Source: Caecitellus pseudoparvulus (Eukaryota > Protista > Bigyra: Bicosoecida). From it: a stretch of DNA of 64,000 nt. Positions within the stretch are counted from its first letter, which is position 1. Each line of letters opens with the position of its first letter. Positions 33,064-64,000 of this stretch are shown in pieces. The position numbers and the translations under genes were made by a program. The notes beneath the pieces were generated by a model. That model was not told where the DNA came from. It saw nothing but the letters and a program-made list of their open reading frames with translations, and searched no databases. The stretch is taken from contig CBFFRQ010000053.1 in the NCBI GenBank assembly GCA_965644315.1, positions 612,662-676,661 on the forward strand, in the 5' to 3' direction.

Positions 33064-33518
33064 TTACACCGTCTTGCGGCTGGCCACGACGCGGGAAATG
33101 CTGCCCAGCCCGCCCTGCTTCAGCAGCGCCGCATGCCACTTGAGCATGCTGCTGCACTCGTGTGTCTCAGCCATGGCCCGGTACACATACTTCATGGCCA
33201 TGTCACATTGGGGCGTGTTCAATGTCTTGGCCACCGTGCTAATCTTCGCGTCTGGCACAGCGCCCATGGCCTTGTACACCAGCTGTGCGTGCTGGGCCTG
33301 CGCTCGGCGAGCAGGCGGCCAGTGCAGCCTGCGGCAGTGCACCAGCGGAAGTTGGCGGCGACCCCACGCACCTTGACGTCCTCATCCTTTGAGTGCAGGG
33401 GCGCGTAGTCCATGGCCGCTGCCACAGCGCCAGCGATGTTTCCCGCTTGCATCTCTGCATCCACAGCCCCCTTCGCCTCGGCCAGTGTGGCTTGCCAGTC
33501 AGCCTCCCCGTCAGCCAT
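33064..33518 (-). CDS. ARPC5: Arp2/3 complex subunit 5
   Basis: APLHSKDEDVK|AQHA.., CDMAMKYVYRAM, MLKWHAALLKQGGLGSISRVVASRKTV-TAA. Intron at 33298-33371. Confidence 0.9.
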
Positions 33519-33710
33519 GGCGCTGCAAACTGAGTGCTCTCCGCCTGGTTCACCAACTCTTCCCTGTGCCGGCGAACAGGAGTGCGCAGGCAGGCCTGGT
33601 GTACCGCTGATCTTCAAGGGGTTGCATTGGTGGGGCTTGTGTGTGCGGGGCGGGATTTGGCCACACCTCGGGAAGTGCACCGGCAGCACCGCCACCCCGC
33701 CGACGCTCGC

Positions 33711-36449
<2,739 letters not shown>

Positions 36450-36686
36450 GACACTGCCTGGTTGAGGGGACTGCCGACAGAGCACTGGGGTGGCGGGCCC
36501 AAATTCCGCACGACCGAACCGCCCGGGGCACTGCCAGGAAACGCTGCAGGCACAGACGCAACGTGGAGCACGCGCCTCCACGTGATGCTGCAGAGCGGTT
36601 TCTGGTTTGTCGACGTGCGGCGAGTGTCGGTGCGCTGTGTCTGAGGTGTGGGGTGCACACAAACGCTGCATTTCAGCGTATGAGAA

Positions 36687-39600
36687 TCAGTCCCCTCCGT
36701 GCCAAAAGTGAACAACGCCCTCCACTTCGTCTTCCCTGCAGGCAGCCGCCCGCAGAGCAGCCTGCAGCTGTTCCACAGACACCGGGCTGCCGGCAGGGGG
36801 CTGTGCCCCCTCGCCCATCACCTGAGCCGCGTCCCCCCTCACCAGCCCGTCCACAGCCACGAGGCTGTCCCCCACGGCCACAACACCTGCCGCCGCCCTG
36901 TCATTGTGCAGGGCGATAACCCTCCCATCTCGAAACTCCGCACCCAGCCGCGATGCCGGTGCCTGCACACGCACAAGCTGCGCCGGTGCCGACGCCGCAG
37001 CCAGCGCAGCGGCGGACAACGAGGCAGAGGGGGGTCCTGAGTGCACTGCTGGTGCACTGCTACCTGCCAGGGCACTGGGCTGGCCTGCTCCTGGAACTTG
37101 TACAGGCGCAGGCGCCACAACCAGAGCCTGAACCCGGCGCAGAGTGGAGGTGGGCCTGGACACTGTGGGGGCTGTGTCGGGTCCCCTCAGGAGCAGTTGG
37201 CCGGGCCCACCCCCTCTGCCCGCCACGTCTTCACCGGTGCGCTCCCGGGGGTGTGGTGCAAGCGGAGCCAGGGTGATGTGAATGCGCGTGTGCTGCACTT
37301 CGTAACAGGTGCCGCTCTCCAGGGCGCCTGCTGGGCTTGCACCCGCAGCGGTAGCCGCCCTATGCGCAGGAGACACCTCGCATGCTTCTGACACAGCCTC
37401 ATGGGGAGCGCCACCCCTCTGTGGGCCCTCTCGCCAGGGTCCTGTGCCGCCTGGTCCGACAGGCGCCAGGTTCACTAGCCGCGGGTCAGCCGCCGACACG
37501 ACACTCCTGCGCATGCTCACGCCCGCATACGCGATGCCGCGCCCGAACGCAGCTGCCTCCGTCGCCTCCACCCTGAAGTGCCCTGGCACAGGGCCAGGCC
37601 CCGGGCCCCGCTGGGCAGGAGTGGTCACAGCTGACGCCTGTGCCGGCGGGGCAGGCACCAGCACATGCACCTTCCCAGCGCGCGGCGTGTAGAGTGTCAG
37701 GGACAAGGGCGGCAGCGACGCAGCCGAGGACTGTGCCAGCCGTCCGAGGCTCGCTGACTCGACTGGGCCATCGAGGTCCGTGCCCGGGGCCGCCCCTCGC
37801 TCTGCCGGTGCTTCAGAGGGGGCGGCTCCGGGAGCGTCAGGAAGTGGCAGCCACGCCACACGCATGACTGGCGGGACCTCACGCCCCGCCTGTGCGCCTG
37901 GCATGAACCACACATCGCTCCCACGCGCCATGGGCACCTCTCCGCCCCTCTGGGGCAGTGCAGCTGGCCCCGGGCCGCGTGTGGCAAGAGTTGTGGTGGG
38001 GTGGGCTGGAGGCGCAGGGGCGGGCGCCAGCAGCGCCACTCGCCCCCTCCCCCGCCCAGTGGACGAGAGCAGCCCGAGGCCTGCCAGGTCCAGGGCCTGC
38101 ACTGTCCCTGTGCGGGGCAGGTGGACCTCCGCTGCCTGAACCTGCACGCTGGCAGGCATTGACATGTCGCCACGCCTTGCTGGCGCCGTGACGGCGGCAG
38201 CGGCGACTGGAGACGGCACAGGCACCTCCACGACTCCTCGTGGAGAGGATGGCTGCACCTCCTGTGTCAGGCTCAGCTGCGCCCCCAACTGCCTGCCGTG
38301 TCGCACGCTCGGTGGAACCTCTGCTGCTTCCGAGAGGTGAGGCTCAGGCGCCGGGCCTGTCTCTGGCAGGCCTGTGCATGGTGCAGCTGCAGCTGGAGCA
38401 GGGGGGGGCATACTTGTGACCCGCGCAATTTGGTCGGGATTGGCGGCGAGCTGTGGCTGGCTGGAGCCTGCTCTGCGGTGCTGGGGAGGCACCTCCTGAG
38501 GCTGGCCAATGACGCCCTCAGCCGCATCCGGCACGCCTAAGGCTCGCAATGTGGCGAGGAGACCACCTCCCATGGCAGTGACGACAGCGTGTGCCGCCAC
38601 AGCGGGCGGCGGCGCGATGGTGACGCTACGTCGGGCAGCTGGGCGCCGCACCGGCCGCGCCGACTGGATGTCGATAGCGATGCTGGTTCGGTCAAGGCGG
38701 CCTCCTCGCTGGTGACGGAAAGGGCGAGGGGCGCTCACGCTGCGCGAGGTGCTCCCATGAGCCGCTGTGGAGTCTACAATCGACACCCGGACACTAGCTC
38801 CCCCCGAATCGTGCGCCAGGAAGATGCGAGGTGGGCCGCCTCCACGCTTGGCAACAGCTGGGGACTCCTCCACGATGGAGCTGAGTGTCCGCCTTGAACT
38901 CTGGGGTGCCGACATCCCAGGCTCAGCACCATCCACTACCACTGCACTTGGGGGCGTGGAGTGCAGTGGCCCTTCCTCCTCGGGTGCAGAGGGCGTCGCG
39001 CCCGCTCTTGGAGAAGAGTGGGTGAGCGCTCGCCGCAACGCCCCGCTGCGAGCGGCGCGAAGCAGCACGGACCAAGCTCTGCTGTGAGCACGAACGCCGC
39101 TGGCAGGGCGTGAGCTCGCGGCTTGCTCAGGCAAACTGGCATGGGGGGCCAGGAGTTCGAGTATGTCCTTGCCATACCGCTCCCGCAGGTAGTGCCTGGC
39201 ACACCGTTGCTGGAGCAATACCTCCGCCGTGATGGGTGGAGCGTGCACCTTCCCTTTCAGGAGGTCCTTGACTGTCGTGGTGGGGGGGCCTTGGGGCGCA
39301 GCACCTGCCTTGCGCGGGCCTGGCACGAAGTGCTCGGCGGGGCCGGCACCGAAATTCCCGTGGGGTTGTTGCGACGACGGCGCAGCGAGACGAAGCGCTC
39401 CCGCTCGACCATCTAGCATCATACGGCTGCCCGCCACTGACTGGTTGGCTGCCTCGCCGCCTCCTTGGGTCCTGCTTGCCACCTGCAAATCGTCGGACTC
39501 GTCCTCTGCAGCTGCTGTGTCGAATTGGTGCCCCTCGGCGTCCAAGTCACTCGCTGCAAAGACTACTTCTTCCCCACTGCTGCTCGTGGCACGCACAGAA

Positions 39601-42600
39601 GTGGACAGAAGCCTGTGCGGAGACTGCCCCGCTTGAGGCGACCCGCCATCGTTCCCGACCGCCGGCACCTCACCACGTTCGGAACTGTGGCTTTGGGCAC
39701 GGATGTCCTTTGACCCCGGTGCTCGTCCATGGATGTGCCTTTGCATCGCGTAGAACGCCCTTGCCACTTGTCGTCGCAGCCAGGCCACCATGCCACCCTC
39801 ACGGCCCGCGTGGAGGACTGGCGTGCTTCCCAGAGCCACCAACGCCTCATGACTCTGCAAGCCTGTCGCCCTTCCAGACGCCCTTAACAAAGTGAGGTGT
39901 TCCATCCGAGCCGAAAGGCCTCTTGAGTGTGGGCCTTGGCGACCCCCAAGCCCCAGGCAGTACACACCACAGCCCGGCAGCCAAGCCACAGCAGGCGAAA
40001 CTGAAGGACGCAGAACAAGGGACCAAAGCATTGAGAGCAATATGAGGGCTGGGTGAATCAACAGAAAAACGACAGCCTGTGTTGTACAAAACGTCTGCAC
40101 GTACGATAGGAGCACGCCGGGGCCGCGGGACAGGCCGAACAGCAGGATAAAGGAGAGCATTAAGGCATGAGCGCAAATGACACCCAACCACGCCAAGGGT
40201 GTCTCCCAGCCAAGAAGCCAACTAATTGGCCTCCCGGGGCCATCAATATACACACAGCAATGGGCAGAGGCCAGTTGGCGCAAAGCAATTGGAGGCAGCA
40301 GTGTACAACATTGACAGACGTAACGCATGGAGCCCTCCTGATCCGGCTGCCACTGGTGTGCCAGTGTTGACGTTGAGCTGGCAGAGGTGGTAGAAACAGC
40401 AACGGGTGAAGTTTGCCGGTCGATACCTTCGATACTGTGTGCCTCTGCTTCCTGGACTGCGTGCCCGACGAGAGGGTACCGCCTGCACCATGCCTTCACC
40501 GCAAGTTTCTGCAGGGACCTTGCAATAAGTGCTGAGAGTGATGGGAAAGCGACAGCATGCTCGGGATCAACGCGGCAGCAAGCACGGCTTGAGCTGCGAA
40601 TCTCCTCTCGACGAAGCGCCCACCTCGCTCGCATGCGCTGCGCAGTATCGGGGCCAACTTTGTCCAAAATAACAGCTTCCTCGATGCTACCAGGCGCAGG
40701 CGGAGCCACACGTGCGGCAGAACCCGTCCAGCAGCAGCCCCAAGGGTCAAAATCTGCCTCCCGAGACACGCGGACCCATTCCGCTCGCTGGCTTGGATGC
40801 CTGCTGCAGGCCTGCACACACACAGTGAAGTTTTCAAGACAGCAGAGCGGGGCATCAAACCATCCGTACAACAGTTCATCTTCTGTATCCACATCGCTGT
40901 CGTTGGGGTGCAAGATTGAATCCGGCGCAGGAGCCGGTGCTGCGCAATGAGAGAGAGGAATGGACACTCGCCCTCCACATGCGTCAACGTCAAGCCGCAA
41001 TTGGTGAACGAGATGGACTTCTTTCTCACCCTCTGGGTTCGGCGAAGTTGACTGCAAGCTTTGCGAATCGTCAAACTCCCGCTCCCAGCCACTAGTAGCA
41101 GAAGCAGCACCCTGAGATATACCTTGCTCACTCGCATAAACGGAGCGTGAGCGAGAAGGAAAGTAAAGGTGTTCGTCTGAAACTTCCCGCGCGAAGTGTG
41201 GCTGTTGGCGTGCCTCCTCCTCAAATGATTTGCGGGCGGCAATCTCTGCTGCGAGGGCGGGGTGCGCATTCGCGAACTCTGCACTCGCAGCAAAACTCAA
41301 GCACCATGAAACGAGAAGCGAGAATGGGATCTGCACTGCAGAAGATATCAACCCAAGCAGCAGGAGTTCATACCACACGGGTTCCTGTCCTTCCACGACT
41401 CCTGCTGCGTCAAAAACGAAAGCCGCAGCTGCAAGCGCAGCGACCAACGACGTGAACAGCACAGTAAGCCGCTTCGGACGAGAGAGCCTCGGATCAAACC
41501 GAAAGCAGAGCGACAGAATCGGATGCTGGAACACAAGCCGGAGCAAACCAGCTCTCCAAAAGAGCGACGCAGATCTGTTGGCCAGCTGCTGTTGGCCTTC
41601 TTTTCGCACAGCTCGGTCTTCGGTGAGAACGCCATCGCTTCGTTCAGGGTGTACACAGTCTTTTCGTGCCAGATAAAGGTCATGTTCACATGTTCTGCTG
41701 ACGTTTGATCCAAGGGAGCTCAATCGACTCACTGACGACGTGATCCCGCCCAGAGAGGCTGCCACTAGTTGATCAAGCCCTGTCAAGGTATTTTCCTCTG
41801 TCGGCGCCGCCACCCTGTCACCCATGCGTGTGCCACGCAGCTCAATGCACGGAATGCACGTTTGCCTAGCCCAATCGTAGTGCTCGCGTTGATCTACTCT
41901 TTCGTTTCCCACATTCCAGCCGTCTGCCTTGTGCTGCAGTCCACGGCTGCGCAGTGTAACCCGCTCCATGTTCCTCACCATGGTGACTTCTTCGTCCTCA
42001 GCAAGTGCTGCCAGAAAGTGCTTGTGTTGGAAACCATCCAGCACGATGCCAAGAGCGAGCAAGCCGACGAAAGCAACGGCCAGGGCGGACAAGAGGACAA
42101 CTACGTAAGTTTGGTCGGCCAGAAAGGCACTGTCCGATCCCCTCCCCCCCCCGACCGGACCATTGTCCTCCCCACCCTCAGTGGATGTCGAGTTGCCCTG
42201 TACTTCATCATCGTCATCGGGACTTGGCTCTCGCCGCTGCCTGGCTGTGGCACCAGAGAAGGTTGTTTTCAACCCAGAACCGATCCGGGCGAAGCGACTG
42301 GAAAACGCTGTCAAGTGATCGCAAGCGCAGGACAGGTGTGTTGCGTTCACAGCATAAGCCACACAGCCCTCCGTCTCCCATGAGCTGTTGCCTGGGTCAA
42401 ACCATGCGCATGCAGCGGTAATGGCAGCTGCAGGGCAAGTCACAGACACATTTCCACGAGCCATATCTTCTGTGCAAGTCACGTTCACTGTCCCAAGGGG
42501 GCATGCAACCTCAAGAATAGCAGACCCGCTGCGGTATGGATCCAACCAGGCAGCATCCTCCGAGCCGCCTGCCCACCAAGCCTCACTCGCATTGTCGGGG

Positions 42601-57600: not shown

Positions 57601-60600
57601 CCGCTCACGCTCGCCGTGCCCGACACCGTGCCAGACGCCGTCCCACTCGCACTGGCCGTCGCCGTACCGCTCACACTGGGCGTGCCCGACACACTCGGGC
57701 TCCCGCTCACGCTCGCCGTGCCCGACACCGTGCCAGACGCCGTCCCACTCGCACTGGCCGTCGCCGTACCGCTCACACTGGGCGTGCCCGACACACTCGG
57801 GCTCCCGCTCACGCTCGTCGTCGCCGTACCGCTCACACTGGGCGTGCCCGACACACTCGGGCTCCCGCTCACGCTCGCCGTGCCCGACACCGTGCCAGAC
57901 GCCGTCCCACTCGCACTGGCCGTCGCCGTACCGCTCACACTGGGCGTGCCCGACACACTCGGGCTCCCGCTCACGCTCGCCGTGCCCGACACCGTGCCAG
58001 ACGCCGTCCCACTCGCACTGGCCGTCGCCGTACCGCTCACACTGGGCGTGCCCGACACACTCGGGCTCCCGCTCACGCTCGCCGTCGCCGTACCGCTCAC
58101 ACTGGGCGTGCCCGACACACTCGGGCTCCCGCTCACGCTCGCCGTGCCCGACACCGTGCCAGACGCCGTCCCACTCGCACTGGCCGTCGCCGTACCGCTC
58201 ACACTGGGCGTGCCCGACACACTCGGGCTCCCGCTCACGCTCGCCGTGCCCGACACCGTGCCAGACGCCGTCCCACTCGCACTGGCCGTCGCCGTACCGC
58301 TCACACTGGGCGTGCCCGACACACTCGGGCTCCCGCTCACGCTCGCCGTGCCCGACACCGTGCCAGACGCCGTCCCACTCGCACTGGCCGTCGCCGTACC
58401 GCTCACACTGGGCGTGCCCGACACACTCGGGCTCCCGCTCACGCTCGCCGTGCCCGACACCGTGCCAGACGCCGTCCCACTCGCACTGGCCGTCGCCGTA
58501 CCGCTCACACTGGGCGTGCCCGACACACTCGGGCTCCCGCTCACGCTCGCCGTGCCCGACACCGTGCCAGACGCCGTCCCACTCGCACTGGCCGTCGCCG
58601 TACCGCTCACACTGGGCGTGCCCGACACACTCGGGCTCCCGCTCACGCTCGTCGTCGCCGTACCGCTCACACTGGGCGTGCCCGACACACTCGGGCTCCC
58701 GCTCACGCTCGCCGTGCCCGACACCGTGCCAGACGCCGTCCCACTCGCACTGGCCGTCGCCGTACCGCTCACACTGGGCGTGCCCGACACACTCGGGCTC
58801 CCGCTCACGTTCGCCGTGCCCGACACCGTGCCAGACGCCGTCCCACTCGCACTGGCCGTCGCCGTACCGCTCACACTGGGCGTGCCCGACACACTCGGGC
58901 TCCCGCTCACGCTCGCCGTGCCCGACACCGTGCCAGACGCCGTCCCACTCGCACTGGCCGTCGCCGTACCGCTCACACTGGGCGTGCCCGACACACTCGG
59001 GCTCCCGCTCACGCTCGCCGTGCCCGACACCGTGCCAGACGCCGTCCCACTCGCACTGGCCGTCGCCGTACCGCTCACACTGGGCGTGCCCGACACACTC
59101 GGGCTCCCGCTCACGCTCGCCGTGCCCGACACCGTGCCAGACGCCGTCCCACTCGCACTGGCCGTCGCCGTACCGCTCACACTGGGCGTGCCCGACACAC
59201 TCGGGCTCCCGCTCACGCTCGCCGTGCCCGACACCGTGCCAGACGCCGTCCCACTCGCACTGGCCGTCGCCGTACCGCTCACACTGGGCGTGCCCGACAC
59301 ACTCGGGCTCCCGCTCACGCTCGCCGTCGCCGTACCGCTCACACTGGGCGTGCCCGACACACTCGGGCTCCCGCTCACGCTCGCCGTGCCCGACACCGTG
59401 CCAGACGCCGTCCCACTCGCACTGGCCGTCGCCGTACCGCTCACACTGGGCGTGCCCGACACACTCGGGCTCCCGCTCACGCTCGTCGTCGCCGTACCGC
59501 TCACACTGGGCGTGCCCGACACACTCGGGCTCCCGCTCACGCTCGCCGTGCCCGACACCGTGCCAGACGCCGTCCCACTCGCACTGGCCGTCGCCGTACC
59601 GCTCACACTGGGCGTGCCCGACACACTCGGGCTCCCGCTCACGCTCGCCGTGCCCGACACCGTGCCAGACGCCGTCCCACTCGCACTGGCCGTCGCCGTA
59701 CCGCTCACACTGGGCGTGCCCGACACACTCGGGCTCCCGCTCACGCTCGCCGTGCCCGACACCGTGCCAGACGCCGTCCCACTCGCACTGGCCGTCGCCG
59801 TACCGCTCACACTGGGCGTGCCCGACACACTCGGGCTCCCGCTCACGCTCGTCGTCGCCGTACCGCTCACACTGGGCGTGCCCGACACACTCGGGCTCCC
59901 GCTCACGCTCGCCGTGCCCGACACCGTGCCAGACGCCGTCCCACTCGCACTGGCCGTCGCCGTACCGCTCACACTGGGCGTGCCCGACACACTCGGGCTC
60001 CCGCTCACGCTCGCCGTGCCCGACACCGTGCCAGACGCCGTCCCACTCGCACTGGCCGTCGCCGTACCGCTCACACTGGGCGTGCCCGACACACTCGGGC
60101 TCCCGCTCACGCTCGTCGTCGCCGTACCGCTCACACTGGGCGTGCCCGACACACTCGGGCTCCCGCTCACGCTCGCCGTGCCCGACACCGTGCCAGACGC
60201 CGTCCCACTCGCACTGGCCGTCGCCGTACCGCTCACACTGGGCGTGCCCGACACACTCGGGCTCCCGCTCACGCTCGCCGTGCCCGACACCGTGCCAGAC
60301 GCCGTCCCACTCGCACTGGCCGTCGCCGTACCGCTCACGCTGGGCGTGCCCGACACACTCGGGCTCCCGCTCACGCTCGCCGTCGCCGTACCGCTCACAC
60401 TGGGCGTGCCCGACACACTCGGGCTCCCGCTCACGCTCGCCGTGCCCGACACCGTGCCAGACGCCGTCCCACTCGCACTGGCCGTCGCCGTACCGCTCAC
60501 ACTGGGCGTGCCCGACACACTCGGGCTCCCGCTCACGCTCGCCGTGCCCGACACCGTGCCAGACGCCGTCCCACTCGCACTGGCCGTCGCCGTACCGCTC

Positions 60601-63600
60601 ACACTGGGCGTGCCCGACACACTCGGGCTCCCGCTCACGCTCGCCGTGCCCGACACCGTGCCAGACGCCGTCCCACTCGCACTGGCCGTCGCCGTACCGC
60701 TCACACTGGGCGTGCCCGACACACTCGGGCTCCCGCTCACGCTCGCCGTGCCCGACACCGTGCCAGACGCCGTCCCACTCGCACTGGCCGTCGCCGTACC
60801 GCTCACACTGGGCGTGCCCGACACACTCGGGCTCCCGCTCACGCTCGCCGTGCCCGACACCGTACCAGACGCCGTCCCACTCGCACTGGCCGTCGCCGTA
60901 CCGCTCACACTGGGCGTGCCCGACACACTCGGGCTCCCGCTCACGCTCGCCGTCGCCGTACCGCTCACACTGGGCGTGCCCGACACACTCGGGCTCCCGC
61001 TCACGCTCGCCGTGCCCGACACCGTGCCAGACGCCGTCCCACTCGCACTGGCCGTCGCCGTACCGCTCACACTGGGCGTGCCCGACACACTCGGGCTCCC
61101 GCTCACGCTCGCCGTGCCCGACACCGTGCCAGACGCCGTCCCACTCGCACTGGCCGTCGCCGTACCGCTCACACTGGGCGTGCCCGACACACTCGGGCTC
61201 CCGCTCACGCTCGCCGTGCCCGACACCGTGCCAGACGCCGTCCCACTCGCACTGGCCGTCGCCGTACCGCTCACACTGGGCGTGCCCGACACACTCGGGC
61301 TCCCGCTCACGCTCGCCGTGCCCGACACCGTGCCAGACGCCGTCCCACTCGCACTGGCCGTCGCCGTACCGCTCACACTGGGCGTGCCCGACACACTCGG
61401 GCTCCCGCTCACGCTCGCCGTGCCCGACACCGTGCCAGACGCCGTCCCACTCGCACTGGCCGTCGCCGTACCGCTCACACTGGGCGTGCCCGACACACTC
61501 GGGCTCCCGCTCACGCTCGTCGTCGCCGTACCGCTCACACTGGGCGTGCCCGACACACTCGGGCTCCCGCTCACGCTCACACTGGGCGTGCCCGACACAC
61601 TCGGGCTCCCGCTCACGCTCGCCGTGCCCGACACCGTGCCAGACGCGGTCCCACTCGCACTGGCCGTCGCCGTACCGCTCACACTGGGCGTGCCCGACAC
61701 ACTCGGGCTCCCGCTCACGCTCGCCGTGCCCGACACCGTGCCAGACGCCGTCCCACTCGCACTGGCCGTCGCCGTACCGCTCACACTGGGCGTGCCCGAC
61801 ACACTCGGGCTCCCGCTCACGCTCGTCGTCGCCGTACCGCTCACACTGGGCGTGCCCGACACACTCGGGCTCCCGCTCACGCTCGCCGTGCCCGACACCG
61901 TGCCAGACGCCGTCCCACTCGCACTGGCCGTCGCCGTACCGCTCACACTGGGCGTGCCCGACACACTCGGGCTCCCGCTCACGCTCGCCGTGCCCGACAC
62001 CGTGCCAGACGCCGTCCCACTCGCACTGGCCGTCGCCGTACCGCTCACACTGGGCGTGCCCGACACACTCGGGCTCCCGCTCACGCTCGCCGTGCCCGAC
62101 ACCGTGCCAGACGCCGTCCCACTCGCACTGGCCGTCGCCGTACCGCTCACACTGGGCGTGCCCGACACACTCGGGCTCCCGCTCACGCTCGCCGTGCCCG
62201 ACACCGTGCCAGACGCCGTCCCACTCGCACTGGCCGTCGCCGTACCGCTCACACTGGGCGTGCCCGACACACTCGGGCTCCCGCTCACGCTCGTCGTCGC
62301 CGTACCGCTCACACTGGGCGTGCCCGACACACTCGGGCTCCCGCTCACGCTCACACTGGGCGTGCCCGACACACTCGGGCTCCCGCTCACGCTCGCCGTG
62401 CCCGACACCGTGCCAGACGCGGTCCCACTCGCACTGGCCGTCGCCGTACCGCTCACACTGGGCGTGCCCGACACACTCGGGCTCCCGCTCACGCTCGCCG
62501 TGCCCGACACCGTGCCAGACGCCGTCCCACTCGCACTCGTCGTCGCCGTACCGCTCACACTGGGCGTGCCCGACACACTCGGGCTCCCGCTCACGCTCGC
62601 CGTCGCCGTACCGCTCACACTGGGCGTGCCCGACACACTCGGGCTCCCGCTCACGCTCGCCGTGCCCGACACCGTGCCAGACGCCGTCCCACTCGCACTG
62701 GCCGTCGCCGTACCGCTCACACTGGGCGTGCCCGACACACTCGGGCTCCCGCTCACGCTCGCCGTGCCCGACACCGTGCCAGACGCCGTCCCACTCGCAC
62801 TGGCCGTCGCCGTACCGCTCACACTGGGCGTGCCCGACACACTCGGGCTCCCGCTCACGCTCGCCGTGCCCGACACCGTGCCAGACGCCGTCCCACTCGC
62901 ACTGGCCGTCGCCGTACCGCTCACACTGGGCGTGCCCGACACACTCGGGCTCCCGCTCACGCTCGCCGTGCCCGACACCGTGCCAGACGCCGTCCCACTC
63001 GCACTGGCCGTCGCCGTACCGCTCACACTGGGCGTGCCCGACACACTCGGGCTCCCGCTCACGCTCGTCGTCGCCGTACCGCTCACACTGGGCGTGCCCG
63101 ACACACTCGGGCTCCCGCTCACGCTCACACTGGGCGTGCCCGACACACTCGGGCTCCCGCTCACGCTCGCCGTGCCCGACACCGTGCCAGACGCGGTCCC
63201 ACTCGCACTGGCCGTCGCCGTACCGCTCACACTGGGCGTGCCCGACACACTCGGGCTCCCGCTCACGCTCGCCGTGCCCGACACCGTGCCAGACGCCGTC
63301 CCACTCGCACTGGCCGTCGCCGTACCGCTCACACTGGGCGTGCCCGACACACTACGGCTCCCGCTCACGCTCGTCGTCGCCGTACCGCTCACACTGGGCG
63401 TGCCCGACACACTCGGGCTCCCGCTCACGCTCGCCGTGCCCGACACCGTGCCAGACGCCGTCCCACTCGCACTGGCCGTCGCCGTACCGCTCACACTGGG
63501 CGTGCCCGACACACTCGGGCTCCCGCTCACGCTCGCCGTGCCCGACACCGTGCCAGACGCCGTCCCACTCGCACTGGCCGTCGCCGTACCGCTCACACTG

Positions 63601-64000
63601 GGCGTGCCCGACACACTCGGGCTCCCGCTCACGCTCGCCGTGCCCGACACCGTGCCAGACGCCGTCCCACTCGCACTGGCCGTCGCCGTACCGCTCACAC
63701 TGGGCGTGCCCGACACACTCGGGCTCCCGCTCACGCTCGCCGTGCCCGACACCGTGCCAGACGCCGTCCCACTCGCACTGGCCGTCGCCGTACCGCTCAC
63801 ACTGGGCGTGCCCGACACACTCGGGCTCCCGCTCACGCTCGTCGTCGCCGTACCGCTCACACTGGGCGTGCCCGACACACTCGGGCTCCCGCTCACGCTC
63901 ACACTGGGCGTGCCCGACACACTCGGGCTCCCGCTCACGCTCGCCGTGCCCGACACCGTGCCAGACGCGGTCCCACTCGCACTGGCCGTCGCCGTACCGC
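36687..64000 (-). CDS. Giant polycystin-1 (PKD1/REJ)-like membrane protein with a Ser/Thr repeat stalk, REJ, GPS, 5 TM and PDZ-like tail (5' end outside window)
   Basis: Single stop-free frame of >9,089 aa. REJ signature NRAPSAG..G..LKDTFRF..WVDDPEDMPLRYSF (~44490-44625). GPS CAWFD..WETEGC..SCACDHLTAFS (~42298-42415). TM1 at ~42040-42110. PKD1-type HPILSL..SRPKRLTVLF and further TM segments at ~40010-41470. Confidence 0.85.
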   Translation of the reverse strand, partial: GTATASASGTASGTVSGTASVSGSPSVSGTPSVSVSGSPSVSGTPSVSGTATTSVSGSPSVSGTPSVSGTATASASGTASGTVSGTASVSGSPSVSGTPSVSGTATASASGTASGTVSGTASVSGSPSVSGTPSVSGTATASASGTASGTVSGTASVSGSPSVSGTPSVSGTATASASGTASGTVSGTASVSGSPSVSGTPSVSGTATTSVSGSRSVSGTPSVSGTATASASGTASGTVSGTASVSGSPSVSGTPSVSGTATASASGTASGTVSGTASVSGSPSVSGTPSVSVSGSPSVSGTPSVSGTATTSVSGSPSVSGTPSVSGTATASASGTASGTVSGTASVSGSPSVSGTPSVSGTATASASGTASGTVSGTASVSGSPSVSGTPSVSGTATASASGTASGTVSGTASVSGSPSVSGTPSVSGTATASASGTASGTVSGTASVSGSPSVSGTPSVSGTATASVSGSPSVSGTPSVSGTATTSASGTASGTVSGTASVSGSPSVSGTPSVSGTATASASGTASGTVSGTASVSGSPSVSGTPSVSVSGSPSVSGTPSVSGTATTSVSGSPSVSGTPSVSGTATASASGTASGTVSGTASVSGSPSVSGTPSVSGTATASASGTASGTVSGTASVSGSPSVSGTPSVSGTATASASGTASGTVSGTASVSGSPSVSGTPSVSGTATASASGTASGTVSGTASVSGSPSVSGTPSVSGTATTSVSGSPSVSGTPSVSGTATASASGTASGTVSGTASVSGSPSVSGTPSVSGTATASASGTASGTVSGTASVSGSPSVSGTPSVSVSGSPSVSGTPSVSGTATTSVSGSPSVSGTPSVSGTATASASGTASGTVSGTASVSGSPSVSGTPSVSGTATASASGTASGTVSGTASVSGSPSVSGTPSVSGTATASASGTASGTVSGTASVSGSPSVSGTPSVSGTATASASGTASGTVSGTASVSGSPSVSGTPSVSGTATASASGTASGTVSGTASVSGSPSVSGTPSVSGTATASVSGSPSVSGTPSVSGTATASASGTASGTVSGTASVSGSPSVSGTPSVSGTATASASGTASGTVSGTASVSGSPSVSGTPSVSGTATASASGTASGTVSGTASVSGSPSVSGTPSVSGTATASASGTASGTVSGTASVSGSPSVSGTPSVSGTATASASGTASGTVSGTASVSGSPSVSGTPSVSGTATASVSGSPSVSGTPSVSGTATASASGTASGTVSGTASVSGSPSVSGTPSVSGTATASASGTASGTVSGTASVSGSPSVSGTPSVSGTATTSVSGSPSVSGTPSVSGTATASASGTASGTVSGTASVSGSPSVSGTPSVSGTATASASGTASGTVSGTASVSGSPSVSGTPSVSGTATTSVSGSPSVSGTPSVSGTATASASGTASGTVSGTASVSGSPSVSGTPSVSGTATASASGTASGTVSGTASVSGSPSVSGTPSVSGTATASASGTASGTVSGTASVSGSPSVSGTPSVSGTATTSVSGSPSVSGTPSVSGTATASASGTASGTVSGTASVSGSPSVSGTPSVSGTATASVSGSPSVSGTPSVSGTATASASGTASGTVSGTASVSGSPSVSGTPSVSGTATASASGTASGTVSGTASVSGSPSVSGTPSVSGTATASASGTASGTVSGTASVSGSPSVSGTPSVSGTATASASGTASGTVSGTASVSGSPSVSGTPSVSGTATASASGTASGTVSGTANVSGSPSVSGTPSVSGTATASASGTASGTVSGTASVSGSPSVSGTPSVSGTATTSVSGSPSVSGTPSVSGTATASASGTASGTVSGTASVSGSPSVSGTPSVSGTATASASGTASGTVSGTASVSGSPSVSGTPSVSGTATASASGTASGTVSGTASVSGSPSVSGTPSVSGTATASASGTASGTVSGTASVSGSPSVSGTPSVSGTATASASGTASGTVSGTASVSGSPSVSGTPSVSGTATASVSGSPSVSGTPSVSGTATASASGTASGTVSGTASVSGSPSVSGTPSVSGTATASASGTASGTVSGTASVSGSPSVSGTPSVSGTATTSVSGSPSVSGTPSVSGTATASASGTASGTVSGTASVSGSPSVSGTPSVSGTATASASGTASGTVSGTASVSGSPSVSGTPSVSGTATASVSGSPSVSGTPSVSGTATASASGTASGTVSGTASVSGSPSVSGTPSVSGTATASASGTASGTVSGTASVSGSPSVSGTPSVSGTATASASGTASGTVSGTASVSGSPSVSGTPSVSGTATASASGTASGTVSGTASVSGSPSVSGTPSVSGTATASASGTASGTVSGTASVSGSPSVSGTPSVSGTATASVSGSPSVSGTPSVSGTATASASGTASGTVSGTASVSGSPSVSGTPSVSGTATASASGTASGTVSGTASVSGSPSVSGTPSVSGTATTSVSGSPSVSGTPSVSGTATASASGTASGTVSGTASVSGSPSVSGTPSVSGTATASASGTASGTVSGTASVSGSPSVSGTPSVSGTATASASGTASGTVSGTASVSGSPSVSGTPSVSGTATASASGTASGTVSGTASVSGSPSVSGTPSVSGTATASASGTASGTVSGTASVSGSPSVSGTPSVSGTATASASGTASGTVSGTANVSGSPSVSGTPSVSGTATTSVSGSPSVSGTPSVSGTATASASGTASGTVSGTASVSGSPSVSGTPSVSGTATASVSGSPSVSGTPSVSGTATASASGTASGTVSGTASVSGSPSVSGTPSVSGTATASASGTASGTVSGTASVSGSPSVSGTPSVSGTATASASGTASGTVSGTASVSGSPSVSGTPSVSGTATASASGTASGTVSGTASVSGSPSVSGTPSVSGTATASASGTASGTVSGTASVSGSPSVSGTPSVSGTATASASGTASGTVSGTASVSGSPSVSGTPSVSGTATTSVSGSPSVSGTPSVSGTATASASGTASGTVSGTASVSGSPSVSGTPSVSGTATASASGTASGTVSGTANVSGSPSVSGTPSVSGTATASASGTASGTVSGTASVSGSPSVSGTPSVSGTATASASGTASGTVSGTASVSGSPSVSGTPSVSGTATASVSGSPSVSGTPSVSGTATASASGTASGTVSGTASVSGSPSVSGTPSVSGTATASASGTASGTVSGTASVSGSPSVSGTPSVSGTATASASGTASGTVSGTASVSGSPSVSGTPSVSGTATASASGTASGTVSGTASVSGSPSVSGTPSVSGTATASASGTASGTVSGTASVSGSPSVSGTPSVSGTATASASGTASGTVSGTASVSGSPSVSGTPSVSGTATASASGTASGTVSGTASVSGSPSVSGTPSVSGTATASASGTASGTVSGTASVSGSPSVSGTPSVSGTATASASGTASGTVSGTASVSGSPSVSGTPSVSGTATASASGTASGTVSGTASVSGSPSVSGTPSVSGTATTSVSGSPSVSGTPSVSGTATASASGTASGTVSGTASVSGSPSVSGTPSVSGTATASVSGSPSVSGTPSVSGTATASASGTASGTVSGTASVSGSPSVSGTPSVSGTATASASGTASGTVSGTASVSGSPSVSGTPSVSGTATASASGTASGTVSGTASVSGSPSVSGTPSVSGTATASVSGSPSVSGTPSVSGTATASASGTASGTVSGTASVSGSPSVSGTPSVSGTATASASGTASGTVSGTASVSGSPSVSGTPSVSGTATASASGTASGTVSGTASVSGSPSVSGTPSVSGTATASASGTASGTVSGTASVSGSPSVSGTPSVSGTATASASGTASGTVSGTASVSGSPSVSGTPSVSGTATASASGTASGTVSGTASVSGSPSVSGTPSVSGTATTSVSGSPSVSGTPSVSGTATASASGTASGTVSGTASVSGSPSVSGTPSVSGTATASASGTASGTVSGTASVSGSPSVSGTPSVSGTATASASGTASGTVSGTASVSGSPSVSGTPSVSGTATASASGTASGTVSGTASVSGSPSVSGTPSVSGTATASVSGSPSVSGTPSVSGTATASASGTASGTVSGTASVSGSPSVSGTPSVSGTATASASGTASGTVSGTASVSGSPSVSGTPSVSGTATASASGTASGTVSGTASVSGSPSVSGTPSVSGTATASASGTASGTVSGTASVSGSPSVSGTPSVSGTATASASGTASGTVSGTASVSGSPSVSGTPSVSGTATSSVSGSPSVSGTPSVSGTATASASGTASGTVSGTASVSGSPSVSGTPSVSGTATASASGTASGTVSGTASVSGSPSVSGTPSVSGTATASASGSPSVSGTPSVSGTATASASGTASGTVSGTASVSGSPSVSGTPSVSGTATASASGTASGTVSGTASVSGSPSVSGTPSVSGTATASASGTASGTVSGTANVSGSPSVSGTPSVSGTATASASGTASGTVSGTASVSGSPSVSGTPSVSGTATSSVSGSPSVSGTPSVSGTATASASGTASGTVSGTASVSGSPSVSGTPSVSGTATASVSGSPSVSGTPSVSGTATASASGTASGTVSGTASVSGSPSVSGTPSVSGTATASASGTASGTVSGTASVSGSPSVSGTPSVSGTATASASGAASGTVSGTASVSGSPSVSGTPSVSGTATASASGTASGTVSGTASVSGSPSVSGTPSVSGTATASASGTASGTVSGTASVSGSPSVSGTPSVSGTATASASGTASGTVSGTASVSGSPSVSGTPSVSGTATASASGTASGTVSGTASVSGSPSVSGTPSVSGTATASASGAASGTVSGTASVSGSPSVSGTPSVSGTATASASGTASGTVSGTASVSGSPSVSGTPSVSGTATTSVSGSPSVSGTPSVSGTATASASGTASGTVSGTASVSGSPSVSGTPSVSGTATASASGTASGTVSGTASVSGSPSVSGTPSVSGTATASASGTASGTVSGTASVSGSPSVSGTPSVSGTATASASGTASGTVSGTASVSGSPSVSGTPSVSGTATASASGTASGTVSGTASVSGSPSVSGTPSVSGTATASVSGSPSVSGTPSVSGTATASASGTASGTVSGTASVSGSPSVSGTPSVSGTATASASGTASGTVSGTASVSGSPSVSGTPSVSGTATASASGTASGTVSGTASVSGSPSVSGTPSVSGTATASASGTASGTVSGTASVSGSPSVSGTPSVSGTATTSVSGSPSVSGTPSVSGTATASASGTASGTVSGTASVSGSPSVSGTPSVSGTATASASGTASGTVSGTASVSGSPSVSGTPSVSGTATASASGTASGTVSGTASVSGSPSVSGTPSVSGTATASASGTASGTVSGTASVSGSPSVSGTPSVSGTATSSVSGTPSVSGTATSSVSGTPSVSGTATASVSGTPSVSGTATSSVSGTPSVSGTATSSVSGTPSVSGTATSSVSGTASVSGTATSSVSGTATSSMSGTATSSVSGTASVSGTATSSVSGTPSVSGTATSSVSGTASVSGTATSSVSGTATSSMSGTPSVSGTATSSVSGTPSVSGTATSSMSGTPSVSGTATSSVSGTPSVSGTATSSVSGTASVSGTATSSVSGTPSVSGTATSSMSGTPSVSGTATSSVSGTPSVSGTATSSVSGTPSVSGTATSSVSGTPSVSGTATSSVSGTPSVSGTATSSVSGTPSVSGTATSSVSGTPSVSGTATSSVSGTPSVSGTATSSVSGTPSVSGTSSLTSSASVTSTPTSSSSVTASVTSSVSPTRTSSVSLGASSSPSSRSTGTSTMTSSSSRTASPTPSSSQTASGSPSSSPTSSSSGTASVTPSSSVTPSATSTITGTPSSTSSGTASRSPSRSVSPSRTGTVTPTSSGTVSVSAVATPSSSASSAPTQSVGASPTRTSSATPTSSATPSPSNLLPAPHLGRAVFNSIGARVVVSFGDDTDQAGLGGKFPCSALFSVSVASEQVFSELPLGTAALEEEAEAAGVTPGHFALDRMLGDGAFCAWASQREVMVSLGAGALLPVGQQLDLLPEKVRRAGGYSEAASGIFFTEAPLNAVAPTIVVKYAQRLGQCDDLYIDASLSTGGAGRPLSFRWEATHFDVAAGAGGSGAQDLMAALVDATTSNSDTVSFPREKLQPGGKYTINLIATNFFQLTSSLAAQRQLVTISVSAAQLPAVQIFGGRSKETPRSRELVLSAVGSAPSCMADAVIPLEYSWRQVSGPSQVSFVQLPDPRAVRIPAGELLAVGASYSFEVTASILGATEHLSSAAIAEVSLSQQAVVPVIEGGSRTAGVLEPLQVSAGRSFDPDISPSVSGVSGIPAGASHQYWFEWSCRVRSTGKSCSELLPAGEFAGLSTIDAFSVSPVLLGEYQGQDLEVGVNVSSVLLFDSSQTWKWAYTSATYTILAGAVPRVTVSQPAGTLLVPSASGTAFKVDVSTRLVLSGAASFSDSALGSQFVFQWNVEAGDVGGTTAGDLFSTPLDQARVALRAGALTPGAAYTLRLDATSAEHPQLGGSTRVFLLANRAPSAGFLESARSTGKALKDTFRFRALRWVDDPEDMPLRYSFWVDPSGGIPSQEELLAKAVGTPLGAKSQDNSIATVLPISTHPQSLVTVVLYVEDSLGSTASSFVRVTASQPLEDGEDPEFAAVSFVSDQVGSATQALAEGNGAKSMAAVSSLAGLLGSASSRQARRSLGGTTAPRFLSGDRNPYVAVVRRHIPFLEFEGLEGLEGSEELTPPVRRQLEDEGGPDPISERAELRERLGRAVQAGLELVVVDDTMRAVALSGLAQVTARPEEVSPSLLNVSHSIVRSLLVSADGQDQVTSSLPIASSMLQVASQLIDADSAVETSRLLQAKRLLRSWVGQHSKGRPSKRAVEDAELALEAEFSSRSCSSDTLRQLASLVHEIAASMTAGALANEGPLMVSSISDSSSIACPSSNFGGVAVQGQVVSLRQGARSGGVLLVPGSGIAPEAVEACHVGDLSDMMTRPVNTQRAAFEFDSGFVDSYDGTENSVALLFAEFRSRPFCTALPDPGDPFVARENGTLSAAAQPLSSFVTDVTLVRGSSEGESSSQSLHLPPSRSGLAYIHLPLVGLKRDMLELPLVHYADSARRRGTSCTKDTLMSEEARLSVPLCPEVGARGAFGELSERQASILDTLTSGDLKARLLSSSPPPAGVHSILRSKDLGELAAQHVVTCPDNASEAWWAGGSEDAAWLDPYRSGSAILEVACPLGTVNVTCTEDMARGNVSVTCPAAAITAACAWFDPGNSSWETEGCVAYAVNATHLSCACDHLTAFSSRFARIGSGLKTTFSGATARQRREPSPDDDDEVQGNSTSTEGGEDNGPVGGGRGSDSAFLADQTYVVVLLSALAVAFVGLLALGIVLDGFQHKHFLAALAEDEEVTMVRNMERVTLRSRGLQHKADGWNVGNERVDQREHYDWARQTCIPCIELRGTRMGDRVAAPTEENTLTGLDQLVAASLGGITSSVSRLSSLGSNVSRTCEHDLYLARKDCVHPERSDGVLTEDRAVRKEGQQQLANRSASLFWRAGLLRLVFQHPILSLCFRFDPRLSRPKRLTVLFTSLVAALAAAAFVFDAAGVVEGQEPVWYELLLLGLISSAVQIPFSLLVSWCLSFAASAEFANAHPALAAEIAARKSFEEEARQQPHFAREVSDEHLYFPSRSRSVYASEQGISQGAASATSGWEREFDDSQSLQSTSPNPEGEKEVHLVHQLRLDVDACGGRVSIPLSHCAAPAPAPDSILHPNDSDVDTEDELLYGWFDAPLCCLENFTVCVQACSRHPSQRAEWVRVSREADFDPWGCCWTGSAARVAPPAPGSIEEAVILDKVGPDTAQRMRARWALRREEIRSSSRACCRVDPEHAVAFPSLSALIARSLQKLAVKAWCRRYPLVGHAVQEAEAHSIEGIDRQTSPVAVSTTSASSTSTLAHQWQPDQEGSMRYVCQCCTLLPPIALRQLASAHCCVYIDGPGRPISWLLGWETPLAWLGVICAHALMLSFILLFGLSRGPGVLLSYVQTFCTTQAVVFLLIHPALILLSMLWSLVLRPSVSPAVAWLPGCGVYCLGLGGRQGPHSRGLSARMEHLTLLRASGRATGLQSHEALVALGSTPVLHAGREGGMVAWLRRQVARAFYAMQRHIHGRAPGSKDIRAQSHSSERGEVPAVGNDGGSPQAGQSPHRLLSTSVRATSSSGEEVVFAASDLDAEGHQFDTAAAEDESDDLQVASRTQGGGEAANQSVAGSRMMLDGRAGALRLAAPSSQQPHGNFGAGPAEHFVPGPRKAGAAPQGPPTTTVKDLLKGKVHAPPITAEVLLQQRCARHYLRERYGKDILELLAPHASLPEQAASSRPASGVRAHSRAWSVLLRAARSGALRRALTHSSPRAGATPSAPEEEGPLHSTPPSAVVVDGAEPGMSAPQSSRRTLSSIVEESPAVAKRGGGPPRIFLAHDSGGASVRVSIVDSTAAHGSTSRSVSAPRPFRHQRGGRLDRTSIAIDIQSARPVRRPAARRSVTIAPPPAVAAHAVVTAMGGGLLATLRALGVPDAAEGVIGQPQEVPPQHRRAGSSQPQLAANPDQIARVTSMPPPAPAAAAPCTGLPETGPAPEPHLSEAAEVPPSVRHGRQLGAQLSLTQEVQPSSPRGVVEVPVPSPVAAAAVTAPARRGDMSMPASVQVQAAEVHLPRTGTVQALDLAGLGLLSSTGRGRGRVALLAPAPAPPAHPTTTLATRGPGPAALPQRGGEVPMARGSDVWFMPGAQAGREVPPVMRVAWLPLPDAPGAAPSEAPAERGAAPGTDLDGPVESASLGRLAQSSAASLPPLSLTLYTPRAGKVHVLVPAPPAQASAVTTPAQRGPGPGPVPGHFRVEATEAAAFGRGIAYAGVSMRRSVVSAADPRLVNLAPVGPGGTGPWREGPQRGGAPHEAVSEACEVSPAHRAATAAGASPAGALESGTCYEVQHTRIHITLAPLAPHPRERTGEDVAGRGGGPGQLLLRGPDTAPTVSRPTSTLRRVQALVVAPAPVQVPGAGQPSALAGSSAPAVHSGPPSASLSAAALAAASAPAQLVRVQAPASRLGAEFRDGRVIALHNDRAAAGVVAVGDSLVAVDGLVRGDAAQVMGEGAQPPAGSPVSVEQLQAALRAAACREDEVEGVVHFWHGGD
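46978..48060. repeat. Coding tandem repeat with a 42-bp unit (SGTATSSVSGTPSV) and 24-bp variants
   Basis: Repeated ccgctcacactcggcgtcccgctcacgctcgacgtcgc(c/t)gt(g/a), with more synonymous variation than the distal array. Confidence 0.95.
48061..64000. repeat. Coding tandem array: 102-bp unit (34 aa, SGTASVSGSPSVSGTPSVSGTATASASGTASGTV) interspersed with 60-bp units and rare 42-bp units; continues past the window edge
   Basis: The 102-bp period is read directly (48061 to 48163). Units are nearly identical, and all unit lengths are multiples of 6 nt. Confidence 0.98.

Follow-up and report, generated by a model that had tools for sequence, protein, structure and literature searches.

Proteins of the polycystin-1/PKD1 family, among them human polycystin-1 (PC1), PKDREJ and the sea-urchin proteins SpREJ1-10, share a REJ domain, a GPS motif of the HL–T type ahead of the first transmembrane (TM) segment, and a bundle formed by TM1-TM5. 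Members of the family span 1 to 11 TM segments (PMC1934368). A stramenopile relative is Esi0130_0068 of Ectocarpus, a male-gamete-specific REJ-GPS protein of 1,427 aa with 6-7 predicted TMs (PMC4700764). The range of TM numbers and the existence of a REJ-GPS multi-TM protein in stramenopiles were thus already known (PMC1934368, PMC4700764). Here we describe a gene from the bicosoecid flagellate Caecitellus pseudoparvulus that joins the REJ, GPS and five-helix parts of this family to a Ser/Thr array of about 7,000 residues. It lies on the minus strand of a 64,000-nt stretch of DNA (the window; G000:C53:612662-676661), the last position of which coincides with the terminus of contig C53.

The protein differs from PC1 in several respects. 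It has no PLAT domain in the TM1-TM2 loop and no leucine-rich repeats, C-lectin or PKD repeats, carrying the ~7,000-aa array instead. It also lacks the TM6-TM11 half, and cannot fill the place of PC1 in the 1:3 PC1/PC2 channel. A hidden Markov model (HMM) profile of its own family fails to detect PC1 by sequence. The Ectocarpus protein is similar in being a stramenopile protein with REJ, GPS and several TM segments, and with a fast-evolving extracellular REJ region; no giant repeat array has been reported for it, the comparison, TM part included, being one of descriptions.

The array itself recalls the serine-rich-repeat glycoproteins of bacteria (Fap1, GspB, PsrP), in which Ser alternates with Ala, Val or Thr over long regions that are held to form O-glycosylated, rod-like stalks at the cell surface, with a very variable repeat number (PMC6973325). 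An alternating S/T dipeptide region is common to these proteins and the giant array, where it holds at 2,839 of 2,845 positions. The bacterial proteins have an accessory Sec export system, an LPXTG wall anchor and, between two repeat regions, a folded binding region that they serve to present; the giant protein is eukaryotic, lacks such a binding region, has a longer array and is held in the membrane by a bundle of the PC1 type. PsrP, for comparison, has 4,776 aa in all. This likeness is best regarded as analogy, not homology. The strict S/T register, kept in several unrelated arrays and in a distant orthologue, is a testable eukaryotic parallel to the bacterial glycoproteins.

Closer in design are the tethered mucins MUC1, MUC4 and MUC16 and the adhesion G-protein-coupled receptor (GPCR) ADGRG4/GPR112, which combine a giant S/T-rich array with a juxtamembrane autoproteolytic module (SEA or GAIN/GPS) and a membrane anchor. 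The giant protein appears to follow the same design for shedding or force sensing. It differs in its Pro-poor, strict two-residue register, in having REJ and GPS rather than SEA and five TM helices rather than one or seven, and in coming from a protist. By analogy, its mode of action would be that of a tethered mucin or of an adhesion receptor on a mucin stalk, with parts related to PC1. Another parallel is the PKD2-mastigoneme complex of Chlamydomonas, in which a polycystin-type protein bears a long extracellular glycoprotein hair on the motile cilium and a mechanosensory role has been proposed (PMC7265326, PMC11015965). There the hair is a separate, hydroxyproline-rich MST1 polymer on the PKD2 channel, whereas the filament here would be a single covalent chain of the PC1-like protein, its ciliary position being conjectural.

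A sequence-only reading of the window had proposed a giant (>9,000 aa), apparently intronless protein in which an S/T/G/V/A/P repeat precedes REJ, GPS and TM modules in one frame. Translation bears this out. The minus-strand frame is uninterrupted from window 63998 to a TGA stop, giving 9,103 open codons with no intron needed, and 5,673 residues of repeat lie N-terminal to the modules (Table 1). The remaining two minus-strand frames carry 482 and 112 stops. The listing of open reading frames (ORFs) gives 9,089 aa, a count that starts from the first GTG; the frame itself reaches the window edge. That it runs off the window, as had been noted, is correct, but contig C53 stops at the same place, inside the array.

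The missing 5' end lies on a second contig, C180 (112,611 nt). A 25-nt word from the repeat unit is present in 165 copies in the window and in 199 elsewhere in the genome, the latter in reverse orientation, and a rarer 34-nt variant locates the outside copies on C180 at 92.8-106.8 kb. The spacings of this variant on C180 (834, 672, 1098, 834, 834, 366 and 264 nt) equal those in C53. The C180 array runs on the plus strand from ~92,230 to the contig end and hence also terminates inside the array. BLAST aligns the two arrays as a collinear chain of 98.1-99.7 % identity with an overlap of ~17 kb, window 64000 corresponding to ~C180:95,874 and the end of C180 to ~window 47,600. The shared part is ~0.6 kb longer in C180 than in C53, and the array extends a further ~3.6-4 kb beyond C53, up to the gene start. 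Because the unique flank on C180 and the REJ region on C53 are each single-copy in the assembly, the two contigs represent two sides of one locus. The assembly therefore contains ~17 kb of the locus twice, in the overlapping contig ends.

On C180, the array frame opens in an ORF whose first ATG, at 91,961, begins a classical signal peptide with a basic n-region, a hydrophobic core of ~15 residues and then small residues. Some 65 mostly charged residues separate the signal peptide from the array start. Over its initial 3.9 kb, the array on C180 shares its frame with the signal peptide, and the reading phase is consistent between the contigs at the best-scoring junction (C180:95,874/window 64000). 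Joining the contigs gives an array of ~20.7-21.3 kb (~6,900-7,100 aa) and a whole protein of ~10,400 aa. From N to C terminus the order is signal peptide, ~65 residues, array, linker, REJ, GPS, five TM helices and tail, for which the predicted topology places the array, REJ and GPS outside the cell and the tail inside. The earlier reading had the stalk presenting an unseen N-terminal domain and looked to the upstream sequence for a signal peptide and tip domains. The signal peptide is there; the domain is not, since the 5' end encodes only that peptide and the ~65 residues before the array begins. The filament has no tip domain. New here are the gene model, now complete over the two contigs, the strict register and size of the array, and the lack of a tip. 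With a start, a stop and a probable poly(A) signal in the gene model, the protein is among the longest single-exon surface proteins seen in protists.

Downstream of 96,043 the C180 copy is frameshifted. The frameshifts sit in short garbled patches spaced 779-783 nt apart. These patches always fall at the unit variant with an extra 'SVSV'; elsewhere, C180 differs from C53 only by scattered single substitutions. The patches look like consensus or polishing errors in a redundant contig end, not mutations. Inside this one assembly, the array length is reproducible to a few percent between the two versions.

The array of residues 1-5,673 consists of approximately 33 % S, 17 % T, 17 % G, 13 % A, 12 % V and 6 % P, so that S and T make up 50 %. 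Tandem Repeats Finder reports periods of 102, 60 and 42 nt, together with higher-order periods including 468, and the units are 34, 20, 14 and 48 aa long (102/60/42/144 nt). Units of 34 aa (n = 130), 20 aa (n = 35) and 14 aa (n = 22) predominate, with others of 48 and 8 aa; all lengths are even. Alternate positions are S or T in 99.8 % of cases, with zero register slips over 5,690 residues, and 98 % of the partner positions are G, A, V or P. Across 195 units, all unit-length variants are multiples of 6 nt, and the reading frame is therefore under constraint. The alternating register continues into the degenerate linker that follows, decaying near aa 5,824; this linker is also found on two metagenome contigs (L022 and L023). 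We considered a non-coding satellite and rejected it, because none of the 195 units breaks the frame, which the array shares with the signal peptide and with REJ, and because a distant orthologue is built in the same way.

Of 123 copies of the main unit, 118 have the same DNA sequence. The array is therefore young or strongly homogenized, and is expected to be length-polymorphic. With so many identical copies, synonymous and non-synonymous counts among the units were uninformative. An exact-pattern scan of metagenome contigs of the Joint Genome Institute (JGI) for the repeat unit gave zero matches. A literature text search for alternating-Ser repeats found no eukaryotic case in the wording used, which is weak evidence of absence.

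Two further arrays with different units occur elsewhere in the genome. One, of ~590 aa, lies inside a protein with FG-GAP/integrin-like repeats (C41:17449-21626, L003); the other fills a whole 3.5-kb locus and is at least 1,166 aa long (C81:179270-182771, L004). Their S/T-X register is 99.7-99.8 %, compared to 93 % in the array of the orthologue described below. The same register in arrays of differing units argues for selection on the pattern, not descent from one unit. Strict S/T-X arrays are a building block of this organism and recur in several of its surface proteins.

By analogy with mucin domains and the bacterial proteins, the array is probably densely O-glycosylated in the secretory pathway and forms an extended, flexible polymer. 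Matches to Glyco_transf_7C and PMT provide candidate O-glycosyltransferase genes in the genome, although these families are not specific. Glycosylated alternating-Ser regions are held to be rod-like (PMC6973325). At 0.25-0.35 nm per residue, the full array has a contour length of ~1.7-2.4 micrometres. The arithmetic behind the micrometre-scale stalk of the earlier reading thus holds, but contour length is not reach, and the reach was overstated. We estimate a relaxed end-to-end distance of ~140-250 nm (worm-like chain, persistence length 5-15 nm). Because a flexible relaxed chain spans only a few hundred nm, micrometre reach needs tension or flow.

Downstream of the array, Pfam identifies a REJ domain (profile positions 15-432 of 452), in agreement with a genome search, and a GPS motif (E 1.7e-8). 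The GPS reads C-x-C-D-H-L-T-A-F at aa 7224-7232, with the consensus H-L-T intact, and lies 70 residues ahead of TM1. No other Pfam domain is significant in the non-repeat part, where PLAT, PKD_channel, 7tm_2, lectin and PDZ gave no match at E<=10. Hydropathy places five TM helices at aa 7300, 7511, 7545, 7938 and 7976, with long cytoplasmic loops between TM1 and TM2 and between TM3 and TM4. The 190-aa TM1-TM2 loop is modelled as helical or disordered, and it has no PF01477 match at E<=10.

To place the membrane module, we turned to its relatives. With aa 7150-8080 as the query, an exhaustive HMMER search yielded 211 proteins at E<1e-3, 71 of them at E<1e-10, which conserve four blocks: the GPS; TM2-3; a loop block; and TM4-5 plus the following helices. 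Of the 22 relatives scanned, GPS is present in 19 and REJ in 2, while PLAT and PKD_channel are absent from all. No Pfam family covers the GPS-5TM module. An AlphaFold2 (AF2) model from a 28-sequence alignment has a mean predicted local distance difference test score (pLDDT) of 66, rising to 80-95 in the helical core. When this model was compared with representative structures using VIA-align, PC1 was the top match (8z6b_A; Z 14.9, root-mean-square deviation 3.4 Å over 198 aa, 21 % identity), model residues 89-839 aligning with PC1 residues 3063-3610, from the stalk to TM5. The runner-up has Z 6.8, and adhesion GPCR chains, at Z 5.3-6.8, represent helical-bundle background. A seven-helix, secretin-like bundle of adhesion GPCR class B2 finds no support, as there is no 7tm_2 Pfam match and there are five helices instead. 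The module also contains a 'DPRLSR..R' block, which we take to resemble the 'RSRFTRIQR' block of PC1 TM2, a likeness that sequence statistics do not support and that only the structural alignment backs.

The TRPP-like channel half (TM6-TM11, PF08016) has no match at E<=10, and only five TM helices are present. Because the channel half is absent, the protein is not a pore subunit like PC1, and ion flux would need a partner. Elsewhere in the 30.6-Mb genome, the PKD_channel profile (PF08016) has 22 matches, corresponding to at least 15 genes, several of them in frames of 2,000-4,000 aa, and thus a large repertoire of TRPP-type channels. The description of the protein as polycystin-1-like is thus supported as far as REJ, GPS and TM1-5 are concerned; full PKD1-family membership is not, with PLAT and the PKD_channel/TM6-11 half both absent. 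Lacking these two parts, it is not classed as a polycystin-1 orthologue, and we file it as a probable PC1-related REJ-GPS-5TM receptor. The modelled fold suggests that GPS plus PC1 TM1-5 constitutes a widespread, newly recognised family that Pfam does not yet cover. The N-terminal five-helix bundle of PC1 would then stand alone behind a GPS in >200 mostly uncharacterised proteins, which bears on the open question of a role for PC1 TM1-5 independent of the channel half.

The same architecture recurs in relatives. One protein (P0001), from a short-read metagenome scaffold that begins in the final array units, shows 98.8 % identity across 3,228 aa, stops at the identical position and has zero indels over 10.3 kb. 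A more distant protein (P0002, JGI metagenome) shows 35 % identity over the stretch that opens with the folded ectodomain and closes with the TM module, and its contig begins in an in-frame S/T array with a different unit sequence. The metagenome contigs L022 (99 %) and L023 (35 %) accordingly both begin within an alternating S/T array that precedes REJ and is in frame. In these sequences, the combination of S/T array, REJ, GPS and 5TM is conserved in the 35 % orthologue.

The C. pseudoparvulus genome has three REJ genes and one paralogue of the TM module. The latter (C18:353438-364210, L024-L026) encodes 3,591 aa, with 39 % identity in the 5TM module, and is ordered as an FG-GAP/integrin-like propeller, a 300-aa S/T/A/P linker, REJ, GPS, 5TM and a coiled-coil-like tail that ends in a perfect 'AEKAEAERIA'-type repeat. 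As this paralogue has a tip on a short linker, the giant gene either lost its tip or never had one, and its linker has expanded about twenty-fold. The comparison suggests that the array is the spacer-region counterpart of the paralogue's 300-aa linker.

How might such a protein act? Because nothing sits at the end of the array, the array itself would be the working part, serving on the surface of the cell or flagellum to create drag, to tether or to act as a brush; with a stalk that presents nothing, the repeat must be the functional element. GPS autoproteolysis would leave a huge N-terminal fragment attached non-covalently to the stalk/5TM fragment. Flow, contact or entanglement could then pull on the array, straining or removing the N-terminal fragment and exposing the stalk peptide to the 5TM bundle, which might signal by way of its loops and tail or with the help of a partner. 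A PKD2-type channel of the genome is a candidate for that partner. A tethered-agonist model has been put forward for PC1 and adhesion GPCRs (PMC9672506). The window also contains genes for IFT80 and IFT38/Cluap1, which indicate that the organism is flagellated and are uninformative on the position of the giant protein. Taken whole, the explanation that one real intronless gene spans the two contig ends and encodes an N-out surface glycoprotein of ~10,400 aa, acting as an array-coupled receptor, has in our judgement about an even chance of being right. The function that we favour links drag, tethering or a brush-like action of the array to a GAIN switch, and a sheddable coat mucin is its main rival. 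A bolder version holds that stramenopile flagellates independently invented the serine-rich-repeat design of bacteria, a strict (Ser/Thr-X)n glycopolymer, joining ~7,000 residues to a PC1 TM1-5 receptor that stands alone; the product would be a single-molecule hair of micrometre contour that would act as a built-in mastigoneme, pulling a GAIN/stalk switch and gating flagellar PKD2-type channels, with GPS-5TM as the ancestral half of animal PC1 before its fusion to TRPP. We consider this version unlikely.

Several results weigh against a receptor of this kind. The link to PC1 is good, but comes from a single method of structural alignment, applied to a model with a mean pLDDT of 66. A Foldseek search of the PDB with the TM-module model returned nothing at E<=0.001, and sequence searches of the PDB, with the single sequence and with the 28-sequence profile, match only the GPS of adhesion GPCRs (E 3e-10 for the family profile) and not the TM part of PC1. 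Other shape comparisons were uninformative: an ESM-Atlas search gave TM-scores <=0.13, which are meaningless, and a feature search of the Atlas returned only GPS-type clusters at 0.85-0.87, under the trust level. The AF2 model of the candidate GAIN region (aa 6597-7340, 7 sequences) has a mean pLDDT of 32.5 and shows helices then strands, but is too untrustworthy to identify the fold; competence for autoproteolysis is judged by the motif alone. The tail is unconserved, with no similarity to any relative under SEG filtering. At 6 % Pro, the array is unlike a classical Pro/Thr/Ser mucin. Finally, the array length comes from a single assembly with two versions 0.6 kb apart, and with units nearly identical in DNA, collapse, expansion or length polymorphism is possible.

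A rival account is a purely structural role, in which the protein is a membrane-tethered mucin forming the hydrated glycocalyx or coat of a wall-less flagellate, the GPS serves only regulated shedding (as SEA does in MUC1/MUC16) and the 5TM part is a mere anchor. Such a coat could act as a barrier to viruses, grazers or fouling, or in lubrication. The lack of a tip domain fits, as do the similar arrays in several surface proteins of the genome; fast-evolving coat genes, too, typically have homogenised units and reach extreme lengths, and the unconserved tail argues against a precise signalling interface. What makes this account doubtful is the conservation of the membrane part. The 5TM helices, loops and membrane-proximal helices are kept across >70 proteins (E<1e-10), beyond the needs of an anchor, and REJ-GPS-5TM is retained at 35-39 % identity in the orthologue and paralogue. 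The array might instead, in line with the earlier reading, be an adhesive or prey-capture thread, itself sticky or bound by lectins of bacteria or gametes, that tethers particles. Its contour length is in the micrometre range, REJ proteins act in sea urchin gamete recognition and are male-gamete-specific in Ectocarpus (PMC1934368, PMC4700764), and bacterial serine-rich-repeat proteins are adhesins (PMC6973325). In the latter, however, it is a folded binding region that adheres, and the giant protein has none; Pfam finds no lectin or adhesion domain in the non-repeat part, and tip-bearing paralogues (integrin-like propeller) have short linkers. We regard a thread of this sort as improbable.

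A different concern is that the size is partly an artefact, or that the gene is not expressed as read, the array being overlong or misjoined in the assembly, or spliced out, or the locus decaying. Both C180 and C53 end in the array, the C180 copy is frameshifted, the units are nearly identical, and short-read metagenome contigs break at the array. Yet the order of unit variants is identical in both contigs over ~17 kb, 27.3 kb is in frame on C53, the C180 array continues the frame of the signal peptide for its initial 3.9 kb, and the C180 frameshifts are local consensus garbles. The zero indels against the 99 % metagenome copy and the likewise in-frame array of the orthologue point the same way, and we hold an artefact to be slightly less probable than a thread. 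Least probable of all, and very much so, is a regular beta structure (silk-like or a beta-solenoid with a hydroxyl face), which would make the array a stiff fibre or a surface that binds ice or minerals. The perfect two-residue periodicity, with G/A/V partners, would put the hydroxyls on one face of a strand, and the register is kept in independent arrays. Pro, however, recurs regularly in each unit and disfavours long strands, and where bacterial serine-rich repeats show this alternation, it accompanies glycosylation and not beta-fibres (PMC6973325). The array-coupled receptor thus remains our preferred account of the features listed in Table 1.

Table 1. Features of the giant gene and of its second copy on C180 (window positions unless a contig is named; aa numbered from the window edge)
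Feature	Coordinates	Strand	Basis
(S/T-X)n tandem array, C-terminal 17 kb (aa 1-5,673)	46980..64000	-	composition, Tandem Repeats Finder, register, C180 overlap
Degenerate, non-repetitive S/T/P-rich linker (aa 5,674-5,865)	46404..46979	-	translation, register scan
Folded ectodomain (aa 5,866-6,596)	44211..46403	-	35 % identity alignment with orthologue P0002
REJ PF02010 (aa 6,152-6,596)	44211-45545	-	Pfam E 4.1e-35, 121.7 bits
REJ-to-GPS region, candidate GAIN domain body (aa 6,597-7,195)	42414..44210	-	conserved with P0002/P0005/P0006
GPS motif (aa 7,196-7,233)	42300..42413	-	PF01825 E 1.7e-8 to 6.6e-9
Consensus cleavage triplet H7228-L7229-T7230	42309-42317	-	within GPS
Stalk and five-TM module (to aa 8,080)	39759..42299	-	hydropathy, AF2, VIA-align, 211 relatives
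TM1	42045-42101	-	hydropathy
TM2	41412-41468	-	hydropathy
TM3	41310-41366	-	hydropathy
TM4	40131-40187	-	hydropathy
TM5	40017-40073	-	hydropathy
A/P/R/G-rich C-terminal tail (aa 8,081-9,103)	36690..39758	-	composition, open frame
Stop codon 36687-36689 and putative poly(A) signal AATGCA 36667-36672	36667..36689	-	only coding-strand AATGCA in 11 kb
C180 small-indel clusters (loci L019, L020)	C180:95,979-98,388 and 105,458-105,463		comparison with C53

Proteins of the PKD1 family carry a C-terminal coiled coil that binds PKD2; the tail of the giant protein (aa 8081-9103) has no Pfam match at E<=10 and no conserved segment, evolves fast and is presumably cytoplasmic and disordered. Its frame is open for ~1,020 codons, and in the 35 % orthologue 918 codons follow the TM module. 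A chance open frame of this length is not credible, given the ~2 % stop frequency estimated for the composition, and GC content by codon position (GC1>GC3>GC2) is coding-like. Comparison of codon positions with the 99 % metagenome copy was uninformative (70 substitutions, with no clear third-position excess). A PDZ-like C-terminus was considered and rejected, as the last 124 aa have no Pfam match at E<=10 and are not conserved in P0002.

Base composition varies along the gene. GC is 0.73 in the array, with strong skew, falls to 0.56-0.58 from REJ to the TM module, and is 0.67-0.68 in the tail. Window 40000-46000, which covers the REJ-to-TM part, also has a GC content at third codon positions of only ~0.55. 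Values of 0.66-0.74 hold for the gene's tail and for its neighbours, so that there is a marked shift of composition within one ORF.

The AATGCA hexamer, a probable poly(A) signal, starts 15 nt past the stop and is the sole coding-strand copy between 36,000 and 47,000. The next gene, Myb/CDC5-like, begins ~240 nt further on. In its neighbourhood (window 33400-36700, GC 0.74), ORFs of 545-986 aa overlap on opposite strands, for example 33711-36671 on the minus strand and 33412-35679 and 35007-36644 on the plus strand. At most one of them can be a real gene at any one place, and long ORFs alone mean little in this genome.

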